Positions 15,201 to 18,358 of a stretch of 64,000 bases of DNA are shown in pieces (positions within the stretch are counted from its first letter, which is position 1; each line of letters begins with the position of its first letter). Position numbers and translations under genes: made by a program. The notes below the pieces were generated by a model. It worked only from the letters and a program-made list of their open reading frames with translations, was not told the origin of the DNA and did no database searches. Origin of the DNA: Pavona decussata (lineage: Eukaryota); the NCBI GenBank assembly GCA_977016875.1, contig CDRNST010000082.1:1240001-1304000 (forward strand), written 5' to 3'.

Positions 15201-18200
15201 CACTAAATGAAATGGCGCGAGAAGACTGAGTTTAGCTGACCTCACGAATAACTTCTTATTAAATCACAAATCACACACTCGTCGCTGTGTGAAAAAAAAT
15301 GAGCAAAGTCGGCTTTAGACAATTTTGCAAACACTTTCTCATGATGTTTTAAGGCATTTAATCTTTCTTTATAATAGATTCGTTACCGAGGTCCACTTAC
15401 CCTCCTCAAATGCCAAGACAAGTGCTTCTCGCCCAGGCGTCTTTCTTCAGAGAGTGCAGAGGAAACATGGGGTCAGTTGGTAGATGGTGGAACAACAGTG
15501 CTTGTTTGTCCTGGTGACCATTACTCCATGAGTGAGTTACCTCATGCACACGTGACCGGCAGTATCTTAGCAACGGCCCTGGCATTCAACTACCGTCTGC
15601 TGTTCCCAGAATTCCCAAAACCTTCGAGGACCTTCAGCCAAAGGCGAGCCGTTGAAAAACTTACCAACGGAGTAGATGTGTTTCTCCACTCAAAGAGAGG
15701 TTATTATTAATTCTTATCAAGAGAGGTTGTTCTTATCTTATGGATTAAAAGTAGTAATTAACAAGCTCGTCTACAATAACATGGTAAGAGCATCCATGGT
15801 GTGATAGGGGTAGTCAGTGAGTGAATACCGCTTAATGTATAGGAGCACAAAACACATCAATAAACTTTTCTGCTATTTTTTGCCGCTGGATCAGTGTAGA
15901 TGCCGGTGATAGTTGTTACTTCATGTGTAAATAGCCCAAACTAAAGGCAAGGCTAACTCAAGGACAAGAGAGATTTTAATTAAACCATTATTTTATCCCA
16001 AGACCTTCGAAACTTTTTAGCACAAAAAATATAAACACATGCACATTTCACGAATTGTAAAAAGCAAAACAGCAAAACAGTTGTTGTTTGTGGGAAAATA
16101 CGCGACAAATTAAGTTCGAAATATTATGAAGTAGAGGTGACTTTTAAGGGAACTGGTGGCATGTAGCGGGGAAACCAACAATTAATTTATCCTATTCAAT
16201 GACCTTTGTATTCTATTTAAGGAAACAAAAGGCCTCATTTTGGAGAAATATGTTTCAAAGAAGATGCTCATAAACTTGAATTGAGATCAAAGGCCAAAGA
16301 GGGAGAAACAGAGGAGGAAGAGCAAATCAAGAAAACCATTGATCTGAAAGGTAAGCGAAAACAATTAATTTGCCGTGTGACCTCTCTACAGTTATGCTAT
16401 AAGTATTAATATTTTTATCATCACCACTATCATCTCTGTTATTATCATTCTTGTTGTTACATTCGTTGTCCTTATCCATTGTCGGTGATGTTTTTGTTTT
16501 TGTTGTTCTTGTTTTTGTTGCTACCCATCTAGGTTCTCTCGCTAAAACATAAGCCGTGGCTTTAGAAATCTATTTGCATAATGGCCTCCACCCACCTATC
16601 TGTTTTACCGAATTGACTGAGCCTCTGGGCCGAGCTCATCGAATCTGGAATGGCACCAATCTTGGATTAACTGTGAAAAATGCCTATAAGTTGTCGTCGT
16701 AGTTTACCTGGTTTAGCGCATACTTATACAACAACTCGGCCCTAATATTCTTTATCGAAGCAACGTGTCATAGTAACTTCCGGTCTAAACACGCGCTGTA
16801 GTCAGAAGACTGATTCCATTGAATTGCCTTGTGCATTCTTAATACGCATAATTTCTTACGTCATTAGCGCGCGCGTTGAAAACATGGTGTGTTTTCTTTG
16901 GTGCTAAGCCCAGTCAATAACTGAATGCTTAGATTCTCCTCAACGAGCACCGTAACCTACCTTTCTACCTCGTTATTTTAACTCAGCTTTTTTCCTCTTT
17001 ATGCTTAAAAACTTTAAGAAAAAATTGCCTACAGAAAAATAAGTTATTGGCAGAAACACGAGCTCACTCACCACTCGCGGGTATATTTAAGAATTGGTTC
17101 ATGCTTAGCGTGCGTATATCGAGTTATGGACGCATGCGGGACGTTTGGAGAGCACGAGAGAAGCGTAAGAGTTGCTTGAGGCGTAGCCGAGAGCAACTCT
17201 AGCTTCTTGAGTGCTCTCCAAACTTCCCAAGTGCATCCATAACTCGATATACGCACAGCTAAAAGCATGAACCAATTCTTTTATAACATAGTGAAAATAA
17301 AGTAAACGATTCCTGGAAAACAGGTTTTGTTCCTGAAAAATTACAAAATTCTCCGAACAAAAAAAGGTGAAAGTGCTTTCTCATATCGGTTTAATCTTAA
17401 CGTTTCATTAACTTCGACAAGCTCTTATAAATATATATTTTTTATGGTGTCATCTCTCTGTAAAAAGTTTTTTTATAACATAGCGCGCGCATGCTTCCTT
17501 CACCTGACTTGAACACGTCATCGGATGGACGTGATACTGAGAGCTCGCACGCAAGAAACGTGTTAGGTCGATACTGCTTCATATATACTGCTTTCCTGCC
17601 AAGAAATTTATATTTAAATTTATATGTATATCGCCTTTTTAAGCTCTACTTTACTCATGTAACTTCTGTTGCCGCCAGGCACAGCAATAACTGATCAATG
17701 TACTAGCGAGAGGTGAAATCCTGATATTTATAACCCCAAGTCTGTGACCTGTTCACCACATCAGTCACCCACAATTTCATCGTGTACGTGTCATCTATTT
17801 CATACATTGGGTGGTTGGCTGGTTCGCTAAATAGAAACTCATTTTTGAATTAAAGCTAGTAAGCGATTATGAGGTAAACTGAGTGGGTTGTAGCTCTTTC
17901 AAGGACATGGTGACCTGTCTTTTTTCTATTTCATTTATTTAAATAATGCGTAGAAGTGAACAATTAGAGAAAGTTCTAAAAATTTGACGACGCCTTTTAT
18001 TTTGCGGGAATCATCTTAAGTATTTTTTAGACTTACCTGATATCTCCGCTCTGATTAAGAAAACGTCAGTGACTTGCATTGCTGAAAAAGTCCCGCTGCT
18101 GAAACGAGTATTGTTTTTCTTGTTCACCTTATACCAGACCTCCGCATGGTCCAACCAGGAAGATTCGTCTCCAGTGCCTTGATGCATGCCAGCCGCAAGC

Positions 18201-18358
18201 GAAGAGTGGGAGCTAACCTCAGTGGAAACCTGGGACAGATCGCTTCTGTCATAACAAACAGGCGTGTATACAACTTGGAATTCACCGATTATTCCGATTT
18301 AAAAGTCTTCTACAACATGATAGAAGCTGTTTTTGGGGTCACATTGTTGTCCACTTAG
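235..18358 (+). CDS. Patched/NPC1-like RND membrane domain fused to iterative type I polyketide synthase (KS-AT-DH-psiKR-ER0-KR-ACP-TE-PH-like), paralog 1, ~3556 aa
   Basis: Exons inferred from splice sites with consistent phase: 235-236 (AT of a split ATG, tentative), 548-6263, 6461-6617, 7690-10124, 10539-10701, 10944-11222, 11783-12171, 13489-13797, 14344-14661, 14913-15143, 15378-15699, 16222-16350, 18138-18358. Summed length is divisible by 3 with no internal stop seen. Motifs: KS DTACSSS / EAHGTGT / KSNLNHTE; AT GHSLG / RAFHS; DH HALTQGGPVMP / HPSILDACLQ; KR GGLGGFG / VLRD / GQSSYSACN; ACP GVDS; TE GYSYG / MID / PGDH. The N-terminal ~860 aa has two hydrophobic TM clusters alignable to the neighbouring Patched-family protein. 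Confidence 0.93.
648..3120 (+). other. Patched/sterol-sensing (RND-type, ~12 TM) domain of PKS paralog 1
   Basis: TM1 EKAFEKFGFFLARRPQTVLLVSL aligns with LERFFGWFGEGIAKHPLITISF of the 52.3 kb Patched gene. Shared lumenal motifs C.I.SPLE, A.A....Y, F.QDL.F...ASR. 1+5 and 1+5 TM pattern. Boundaries approximate. Confidence 0.88.
3234..4530 (+). other. Ketosynthase domain of PKS paralog 1
   Basis: ISIVGIGCRFP, MDPQQR, GPSIAVDTACSSS, GYGRGEG, EAHGTGT, GSVKSNLNH, NSFGYGGSNVHVIL. Confidence 0.97.
12552..13287. mobile_element. MITE-like element (host) carrying a nested insertion
   Basis: Imperfect terminal inverted repeats TAAGCGGGCGACGCCCCTGAGGATTTTATA / TATAAAATCTCCAGGTGTGTCGCCGGCTTTA; internal GATCGCG-type subrepeats. 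Confidence 0.65.
12583..12968. mobile_element. hAT-like MITE nested in the left TIR of the previous element
   Basis: Perfect 15-bp TIR CAGGGGCACCCAACG / CGTTGGGTGCCCCTG; imperfect flanking duplication TTTTATA / TTTTATG. Confidence 0.75.
17087..17289. repeat. Palindromic (fold-back) MITE-like repeat, family copy 1
   Basis: AAGAATTGGTTCATGCT..GTGCGTATATCGAGTTATGGA arms inverted around a central hairpin; an oppositely oriented copy lies at 62510-62711. Confidence 0.85.

Follow-up and report, generated by a model that had tools for sequence, protein, structure and literature searches.

A predicted PLC-type pleckstrin-homology domain follows the thioesterase in coral Patched-polyketide synthase genes

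Both polyketide synthase (PKS) genes in the window, a 64,000-nucleotide stretch of the Pavona decussata genome, continue past their thioesterase (TE) into a tail that, judging by structure prediction, very likely adopts a pleckstrin-homology (PH) fold. The two genes are convergent paralogs, and in each the reading frame extends about 175 amino acids beyond the TE His across three exons. These tail exons follow the TE in every Patched-PKS copy that we examined, including lineages that are about 40% identical.

We determined the architecture of the host gene from its ORFs and from Pfam matches. On the forward strand, positions 528..15143 encode a Patched/sterol-sensing 12-TM region that continues into KS-AT-DH-ER-like-KR-ACP and the opening exons of the TE. 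The ORFs at 528-6305 and 7674-10160, together with the downstream exons, contain the Patched/sterol-sensing TM region and then KS, AT, DH, KR, ACP and TE. Pfam detected PF12349 along with KS and AT in the window's own first-exon product (P0021), and the TE was confirmed by a Pfam match on an orthologue. Full-length orthologues are 3533-3578 aa long. The host gene has the domains that define the cnidarian Patched-PKS fusion family. Genes combining Patched/SSD with KS, AT, DH, KR and TE are known in hexacorals, and the survey describing them names no domain after the TE (bioRxiv 10.64898/2026.04.08.717340). Its domain scan may have missed the tail because the tail lies below the Pfam threshold and is absent from several gene models. 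Cnidarian PKS domain surveys would miss a PH domain that is sub-threshold, divided over three small exons, and truncated or detached in a number of public gene models.

The exon structure of the tail was established from the sequence and from RNA joints. Exon A of the forward-strand gene (15378..15699) encodes the last TE segment followed by the start of the PH domain; the catalytic His codon lies at 15519-15521 within the motif PGDH, the tail module begins at about 15618, and the exon ends in phase 1. Exon B (16222..16350) is 129 nt long and runs from phase 1 to phase 1, while exon C (18138..18358) ends in a TAG stop at 18356-18358, with an AATAAA at 18367-18372 on its 3' side. The introns between them, 15700..16221 and 16351..18137, have GT..AG ends. 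RNA contigs from three runs (X1, X5 and X6) contain the joints 15699|16222 and 16350|18138, which skip 522 and 1787 bases, respectively. The joint 15143|15378, at the start of exon A, is also present, and a single transcript contig (X1 record 3) covers exons A, B and C. RNA depth in the tail introns is zero except over an intronic repeat. In the paralog, on the reverse strand, exon A (25448..25769) carries the TE His codon and opens the PH domain, exon B (24363..24491) is again 129 nt long, and exon C (23440..23660) ends in a TAA stop at 23440-23442. The sequence-only reading had placed the 129-nt exon at 16222-16350 and 24491-24363, which is exact to the base and agrees with the RNA joints of the forward-strand gene, and its peptide strings for the tail were correct. 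It had also described a continuation of about 165 aa over three exons. The three exons hold, and about 175 aa separate the TE His from the stop, of which the domain proper makes up about 140 aa. Transcripts of the forward-strand gene run on into the tail exons, as all three RNA runs carry both joints.

A palindromic repeat of MITE-like character and high copy number lies at about 17090-17400, in the intron between exons B and C of the forward-strand gene. Over 1000 candidate copies were found; they match themselves in reverse orientation too. A miRNA reading of the repeat hairpin was rejected, as its match to MIR5020 (28.5 bits versus 73), the only one in Rfam, is below threshold.

Pfam, fold and structure searches of the spliced tail were performed on an orthologue from Desmophyllum (P0128), which is about 80% identical to the window exons. 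Of 24,736 Pfam families, PH (PF00169) was the best match (E 0.035), with 15.1 bits against a cut-off of 25.1. This sub-threshold match runs end to end, aligning tail residues 23-134 with positions 7-102 of the 105 in the profile, and PF00169 was matched in two of five orthologues. No match to PF17787 or PF16457 (PH_14/PH_12) was found by hmmscan on the orthologous tail, even at E-values up to 10. Scanned exon by exon, the single window exons of both paralogs gave only a chance match to Catalase-rel (E 0.067), and sequence searches of PDB chains with a single tail or a profile returned chance matches only (E ~1).

Structure prediction was more informative. AlphaFold2 modelled P0128:2375-2517 with PH topology (pLDDT 83.9, pTM 0.80), with the caveats of a shallow alignment and of low quality (pLDDT 47) in two of the five models; short divergent fragments that MAFFT misaligned had been dropped from the alignments for folding. 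The model has strands at 19-24, 33-40, 45-49, 64-68, 72-77, 105-110 and 114-119 and a capping helix at 122-136, with extra helices at 6-16 (N-terminal) and 82-88 (beta5-beta6 loop). A co-fold of the TE and tail gave identical secondary structure for the PH domain (pLDDT 75-94), while the TE itself was poorly modelled (pLDDT 56, pTM 0.38) and no confident TE-PH interface was obtained. The top 50 Foldseek matches were all PH or PH-like. In VIA-align, the model matched PLC-gamma2 with Z 14.1 (rmsd 2.7 A, 118 aligned), PLC-delta1 (1mai) with Z 12.7 (116/119) and PLC-epsilon with Z 11.6-11.9, followed by ISP1 with Z 11.4; other non-PLC PH domains reached at most 10.5. PLC-gamma, PLC-delta1 and PLC-epsilon came out first whether VIA-align was seeded from Foldseek or run exhaustively. 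The best cluster by ESM features was PH_14 (0.90), and the Atlas shape matches were PH proteins. Considering the AlphaFold2 model and the structural ranking, in which PLC PH domains come first, a PLC-type PH fold is well supported for the predicted tail. The resemblance had been suggested by the sequence-only reading and is borne out by the model, by Foldseek and two VIA-align searches, by the end-to-end sub-threshold Pfam match and by the ESM features. We call the tail PLC-like by its predicted structure and make no claim of descent from a PLC gene.

The three exons divide the predicted domain between them. Exon A encodes the N-terminal helix (QRRAVEKL), strand beta1 (GVDVFLH) and a basic pair (KR). 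Exon B encodes the beta1-beta2 loop (NKRPH), beta2, beta3, a variable, charged beta3-beta4 loop and beta4 (KKTIDLK). Exon C encodes beta5 (LRMVQPG), helix alpha2, a basic patch (RKRRVG), beta6, beta7, the C-terminal helix DLKVFYNMIEAVF and a short hydrophobic tail. We take the segment I-D-L-x-D-L-R-M-V-x-P-G and the helix after it to resemble the beta4-beta5 segment of PLC-delta1. In every copy, a short linker is all that separates the PH module from the last TE helix.

The tail is strongly basic: the two window copies carry net charges of +9 and +12, the orthologues +8 to +11 and the distant lineage L015 +19. Residues G18, V19, L23 and H24 and the basic pair closing beta1 are conserved in four lineages. 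In the window, the beta1-beta2 segment reads LHSKRGNKRPHFGE and LHSKKGSKRPHFGE, with Lys residues within the loop. Beta2 begins with His in main-clade copies, with Lys in L015 and with Arg in the candidate exon of the C56 gene. The phosphoinositide motif K-Xn-(K/R)-X-R is approximated in a non-canonical form with His, Lys or Arg at its last position. The near-invariant PH Trp of the C-terminal helix is absent from all copies compared, in the main clade and in distant lineages. This helix is DLK(V/A)FYNMIEAVF in all main-clade copies and has F, Y, L or C at the corresponding positions in distant ones; judged from its place in the model helix, a Phe or Tyr fills the core position. Conservation of the RKRR patch does not extend to distant lineages, and main-clade copies have an acidic beta3-beta4 loop next to the putative pocket. 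The approximated motif, the replaced Trp, the unconserved patch and the acidic loop were counted against a lipid role.

We also compared the tail among copies and lineages. Between the two window paralogs, protein identity is 82-88%, 62% and 79% for exons A, B and C, and dN/dS is 0.17, 0.36 and 0.25. By this sequence comparison, the tail exons are under purifying selection. All seven Patched-PKS genes of this genome contain exons A and C, and all six copies on contig C82 contain exons A, B and C free of stops. The gene on contig C56, about 40% identical, is likewise a complete Patched-PKS in which exons A and C are present, while neither tblastn nor an exon-B HMM found its exon B. A homologous-looking candidate lies at L008:1888-1997(-). 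Its long form is out of phase with exon C, and its in-phase 54-nt form would remove beta3 and beta4.

Outside this genome, the tail occurs in spliced form, at 70-86% identity, in annotated orthologues (P0128 and P0141-P0144) of Desmophyllum, Oculina and Stylophora, and the gene models of several further annotated orthologues (P0074, P0118) end before it. In two distant lineages, ENA contigs show thioesterase and carrier-protein exons followed downstream by a homologue of exon C. One of them, L015, also contains KR exons, and exon B at L015:9144-9299. Exon phases are kept across lineages that are 36-45% identical. An exhaustive search of 1.84 billion proteins with an exon-C profile returned only 20 cluster representatives, all of them short ORFs of 42-205 aa, with no spliced protein and no other architecture. 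The matches inspected have non-homologous lead-in sequence, consistent with genomic ORFs; the contigs of P0014 and P0018, at about 1.3 kb, are too short for upstream exons. Another of the matches, P0016, was discarded as a repeat false positive.

We propose that the PLC-type PH tail binds anionic membrane and thereby returns the TE to the bilayer, an overall explanation to which we give an even chance. In this picture, the Patched-like transporter domain would carry the PKS arm at its C-terminus, suspended in the cytosol. Through its beta1-beta2 loop and the basic insert between beta5 and beta6, the PH domain, itself basic, would most likely bind the anionic cytosolic leaflet and so draw the TE back to the membrane. 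There the hydrophobic product would leave the TE next to the transporter domain of the same enzyme, or pass into it. The PH tail may well hold the product-releasing end of the enzyme at the membrane. That membrane or lipid binding is the job of the PH domain is, at best, an evenly balanced proposition, with which the charge of +8 to +19 and the conserved basic beta1-beta2 loop would fit. The sequence-only reading had placed release of the TE product at a phosphoinositide-marked bilayer or a membrane contact site, and nothing in the present analysis points to a contact site. A closed machine seems unlikely: here the PH domain would clamp the TE on the cytosolic leaflet by the sterol-sensing cavity, the polyketide would pass from TE to transporter, bypassing the cytosol, and a specific phosphoinositide would set where and when this happens.

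Other explanations of the tail place its function elsewhere or deny it one. That the tail is read-through, an annotation artefact or decaying sequence resembling a PH domain by chance could draw on the sub-threshold Pfam match, the gene models that stop early (P0074 and P0118) and the failure to locate exon B of C56. This non-functional reading is largely refuted by exact splice junctions in three RNA runs, dN/dS of 0.17-0.36, intact frames in six tandem copies, phases conserved at 36-45% identity and a confident fold prediction, and we regard it as scarcely credible. The tail might instead regulate or assist the TE directly, as a lid, a gate or a binder of the hydrophobic product, with membrane proximity being incidental. 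Its direct fusion to the last TE helix in every copy is consistent with this, as is the presence of lipid-handling PH-like folds (Lam6 (5yqr), CERT and Osh3) among the weaker structural matches. However, PLC PH domains of the signalling type, and not PH-like folds with a ligand cavity, match best, and AlphaFold2 gave no confident TE-PH interface, leaving direct assistance to the TE improbable.

A less remote alternative, though still somewhat unlikely, is that the tail is a protein-protein module that docks on a cytosolic face of the enzyme's own Patched-like domain, the acidic ACP, a partner enzyme or the second subunit of the PKS dimer. Most PH domains do not bind phosphoinositides specifically, and several PLC-type PH domains (PLC-beta and PLC-gamma) work mainly through protein contacts, as do those of Toxoplasma ISP1 and ISP3. 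PLC-gamma and PLC-beta PH domains rank high structurally, and ISP1 is the best Foldseek match by E-value (2.4e-5; Z 11.4). The degenerate lipid motif and the unconserved RKRR patch point the same way, and a strongly basic surface would also suit an acidic partner such as the ACP. Yet no partner emerged, and the TE co-fold was uninformative. Every lineage retains the positive charge while the individual basic residues shift, a pattern seen more typically with non-specific binding to anionic membrane than with a fixed protein interface.

No PH domain fused to a PKS was found in the literature searched. Within that literature, the PH ending is new for this enzyme class, whereas the Patched-PKS family itself was already known. 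The usual picture of type I polyketide and fatty-acid synthases is of a soluble assembly line whose last station is the thioesterase. In the coral family, a 12-helix lipid transporter anchors the start of the enzyme, and a predicted membrane-type targeting domain stands at its end. If the PH domain binds the bilayer, release of a hydrophobic product at the membrane would be built into the enzyme, possibly with handover to its own exporter. If the closed-machine reading were true, the enzyme would be a lipid-gated synthase-exporter without a described counterpart in animals. As a small, soluble domain, the PH tail offers a testable handle on an unknown coral metabolite pathway.

Among known systems, the closest likeness is to the PH domains of PLC-delta1 (1mai), PLC-gamma1/2, PLC-epsilon and PLC-beta. 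They share with the predicted tail an N-terminal helix, seven strands, a beta5-beta6 helix and a C-terminal helix (Z about 12-14 over 113-121 residues), yet identity is only 11-14%. The basic beta1-beta2 loop is common to both. The PLC PH domain is N-terminal to EF-hands and the X/Y catalytic core, whereas the coral domain is C-terminal to a PKS thioesterase and has His, Lys or Arg in place of the beta2 Arg and Phe or Tyr in place of the helix Trp. Toxoplasma ISP1 and ISP3 (4chm and 4chj) have a PH-like fold that is likewise C-terminal in a membrane-associated protein, and resemble the tail both by structure (ISP1, values above) and by ESM features (ISP3_C cluster, 0.89). They are apicomplexan, occur in an unrelated context and score below the PLC PH domains. 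ISPs are not known to have a lipid-binding pocket and probably act via protein contacts. CERT and OSBP/Osh3 (Z 8.6-9.2) share the logic of a PH domain that places a lipid-handling module at a defined membrane, but they belong to other enzyme classes, and their PH domain is N-terminal and binds PI4P specifically. Finally, the Patched-PKS family as surveyed (bioRxiv 10.64898/2026.04.08.717340) comprises the same genes, to which the present analysis adds the PH tail after the TE.

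The window carries two paralogous, convergent genes. In each, one long 5' exon encodes a Patched/sterol-sensing 12-TM domain together with KS-AT-DH, as seen from the ORFs and from Pfam matches on P0021, a product of the window. In each paralog, this long exon is followed 3' by exons that encode an ER-like region, KR, ACP and a thioesterase (TE). The nearest database proteins are from Desmophyllum, Oculina and Stylophora, in keeping with DNA of a stony coral. Both genes continue past the TE His into a C-terminal tail encoded by three terminal exons, A, B and C, which were read from the DNA. 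On the plus strand, exon A occupies 15378-15699, with the catalytic His in the motif PGDH at 15519-15521 and a GYSYG-type TE sequence upstream of it. Exon B (16222-16350) is 129 nt long with phase 1 at both ends, and exon C (18138-18358) ends in a TAG stop, followed by AATAAA at 18367-18372. The corresponding exons of the minus-strand paralog lie at 25769-25448, 24491-24363 and 23660-23440. Shortly before the paralog's exon C there is a run of about 190 N (23693-23882), and its exon B is preceded by roughly 100 bp of (AAT)n microsatellite (24540-24640). Protein identity between the paralogs is 82-88% in exon A, 62% in exon B and 79% in exon C. The dN/dS values calculated per exon between the paralogs (Nei-Gojobori) are 0.17, 0.36 and 0.25, respectively, with dS of 0.38-0.85; all three tail exons are therefore clearly under purifying selection.

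We compared transcript contigs from four public runs with window positions 14300-18700. Three of these runs, X1, X5 and X6, come from three studies, although X1 and X5 share one sample. All three showed even depth over the exons and zero depth over the introns, except at an intronic repeat. The joints 15143|15378, 15699|16222 and 16350|18138 had GT..AG ends in all three runs, while 14661|14913 was canonical in X5 and X6 and showed a one-base variant in the X1 contig. The run label itself is a guess, but this exon-only coverage and these joints show that X1, X5 and X6 are RNA. One contig (X1 record 3) passes through exons A, B and C. The tail exons proposed in the sequence-only reading are thus transcribed, with transcripts running through them rather than ending before them; this contig-based evidence is also compatible with rare shorter isoforms.

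The intron between exons B and C contains a palindromic element of about 310 bp (17090-17400) that matches itself on the opposite strand, looks like a MITE and has more than 1000 candidate copies genome-wide at 93-97% identity. This high-copy palindrome accounts for the spike in RNA depth at its position, which peaked at 9270 in the metatranscriptome run, and for a below-threshold Rfam match to MIR5020 at 17128-17238 (28.5 bits versus 73). Just 3' of the stop and AATAAA of the plus-strand gene, at 18416-18700, contig depth in the three coral runs exceeded that over the PKS exons by a factor of 5 to 20, and in the metatranscriptome run it reached 28896 versus 0-194 over the PKS exons. The signal derives from separate contigs of 1.3-1.6 kb starting at 18468, and represents a separate element between the convergent genes that is highly expressed or repeated.

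The spliced tail was studied through database orthologues, annotated coral proteins retrieved by a word search that used the first exon of the window. The Desmophyllum pertusum protein OS493_013734 (P0128) ends in the TE followed by the entire tail, and a search with its tail region added four full-length proteins (3533-3578 aa, 70-86% identity) from Oculina patagonica and Stylophora pistillata. Identity between the window and P0128 is 78-81% in exons A and C and 67% in exon B. Other public models, such as P0074 (Stylophora LOC111328543) and P0118, end within the TE or KR and lack the tail, which is one reason why the C-terminal domain has been overlooked. In Acropora palmata, NCBI annotates exons B and C as a separate 136-aa 'uncharacterized protein' (P0155, XP_074625481.1) with an unrelated first exon. 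Either the gene model has been split wrongly, or most of the domain is encoded by a short transcript of its own.

Exon C is present in seven copies in the P. decussata genome, six on the window's contig (C82) at 80-100% identity and one on a second contig (C56) at 38%. Exon A was found at the same seven loci and exon B at the six C82 loci, and no copy of any tail exon contains a stop. At the sensitivity of an exon-level search, the tail was found in no other genes of this genome. The C56 copy belongs to a complete Patched-PKS with the same exon order and 40% identity over its first 1965 residues. This copy contains a candidate exon B, STRFLQEPRIEWKTKTLSIDSKESLNRTDILQIRFK, at L008:1888-1997 on the minus strand. 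Its sole good downstream donor gives phase 0, whereas exon C requires phase 1; an in-phase donor would give a 54-nt exon and remove two strands of the PH fold. The mismatch could mean that the candidate is a pseudo-exon, that the assembly is wrong here or that splicing follows another pattern.

An exhaustive search of 1.84 billion cluster representatives with an exon-C profile matched only 20 proteins, all short ORFs of 42-205 aa. One was a false positive caused by a repeat; in those examined the lead-in sequence was not homologous, which fits genomic ORFs. Of the most divergent matches, two lie on long ENA contigs, on the same strand as and downstream of PP-binding and Thioesterase exons. One of these contigs, L015, also has KR exons upstream of the tail; delimited from sequence, its exon A ends at 8149, exon B spans 9144-9299 and exon C starts at 10047, with the same intron phases as in the window despite only about 37% identity in exon C. 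On L017, an ENA contig of a divergent lineage, the TE His motif is SPGNH, not CPGDH (6175-6513), and the intron before exon C contains a long repeat run that would encode Arg-Glu/Asp. The phases and TE context kept in divergent lineages, with few matches elsewhere, indicate that the tail is an old, fixed component of the Patched-PKS family and, as far as could be seen, confined to it.

The sequence-only reading had likened the tail to PLC-type PH domains, and we assessed this on the orthologue tail (P0128:2375-2517), which stood in for the window's own spliced tail. The best Pfam match among 24,736 families was PH (PF00169), below threshold (E 0.035, 15.1 bits versus a cut-off of 25.1), running from residue 23 to 134 of the tail and from position 7 to 102 of the 105-position profile; it appeared in two of the five orthologues. 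No match came from sequence searches against PDB chains. AlphaFold2, given a shallow 29-row alignment of five spliced tails with single-exon fragments as separate rows, returned a model with mean pLDDT 83.9 and pTM 0.80 (three of five models were good, two poor). The predicted helices are 6-16, 82-88 and 122-136 and the strands 19-24, 33-40, 45-49, 64-68, 72-77, 105-110 and 114-119, with a small hairpin after helix 82-88 and disorder only in the charged loop 54-61. Prediction of a 444-residue TE and tail segment recovered the tail secondary structure (pLDDT 75-94), with a poor TE part.

All 50 listed Foldseek matches in the PDB were PH or PH-like, including ISP1 (E 2.4e-5), PLC-gamma, ASAP1 and PLC-delta1. 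When this list was realigned with VIA-align, ranks 1-11 were all PLC PH domains: PLC-gamma2 (Z 14.1, rmsd 2.7 A, 118 residues), PLC-gamma1 (13.8), PLC-delta1 (1mai; 12.7 over 116 of its 119 residues) and PLC-epsilon (11.6) among them, followed by ISP1 (11.4), PLC-beta (10.9) and other PH domains, none above 10.5. Exhaustive VIA-align against 48,161 representatives gave the same order, with every listed match in a PH-like fold family. Two PDB-independent approaches pointed the same way: ESM language-model features placed the tail nearest the PH_14 cluster (0.90), then ISP3_C and ELMO PH_12, and an Atlas shape search returned PH-containing proteins, including PLC-eta and PLC-gamma. The predicted structure thus bears out the proposed resemblance, and the tail very probably adopts a PH fold. 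Its N-terminal helix and beta5-beta6 helix suggest a likely PLC-like subtype, in a structural sense that does not imply origin from a PLC gene.

The domain is strongly basic in each lineage, with a net charge (K+R minus D+E, per exon, summed) of +9 in the plus-strand gene, +12 in its paralog, +8 to +11 in the orthologues and +19 in L015. In exon A, G18, V19, L23 and H24 are kept across four lineages, as is a basic pair at the end of beta1. The beta1-beta2 loop in the window, KRGNKRPH, approximates the phosphoinositide motif K-Xn-(K/R)-X-R without equalling it, and beta2 opens with His in the main clade, with Lys in L015 and with Arg in the candidate exon of C56. A second basic patch, RKRRVG, follows the beta5-beta6 helix without variation throughout the main clade, but distant lineages have lost it. 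The main clade also has an acidic beta3-beta4 loop, which in L015 is basic. The usual Trp of the C-terminal helix is replaced by Phe or Tyr.

Specific phosphoinositide binding is a property of a minority of PH domains, and weak binding to anionic membranes is seen in many basic ones. Patched-family proteins have both termini in the cytosol, which should leave the PKS arm and the PH domain facing the cytosolic leaflet. The best reading of the predicted domain is that it may act as a membrane-surface clasp, which would bring the TE back to the bilayer in which the enzyme's own transporter domain sits. The principal alternative is protein docking, in which the PH domain would bind the cytosolic face of Patched, the acidic ACP or a partner, and the ISP and PLC-beta/gamma precedents fit this. 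No finding of the analysis speaks for the membrane contact site proposed in the sequence-only reading.

PH folds rank among the most common domains of eukaryotes. In the literature that could be searched, we found no case of a PKS thioesterase followed by a fused PH domain, a combination that is also invisible to threshold-based domain scans. The gene family itself is already known as the cnidarian Patched-PKSs, most cnidarian PKSs being described as a Patched domain with KS, AT, DH, KR and TE, and nothing given after the TE (2026 preprint, 10.64898/2026.04.08.717340).
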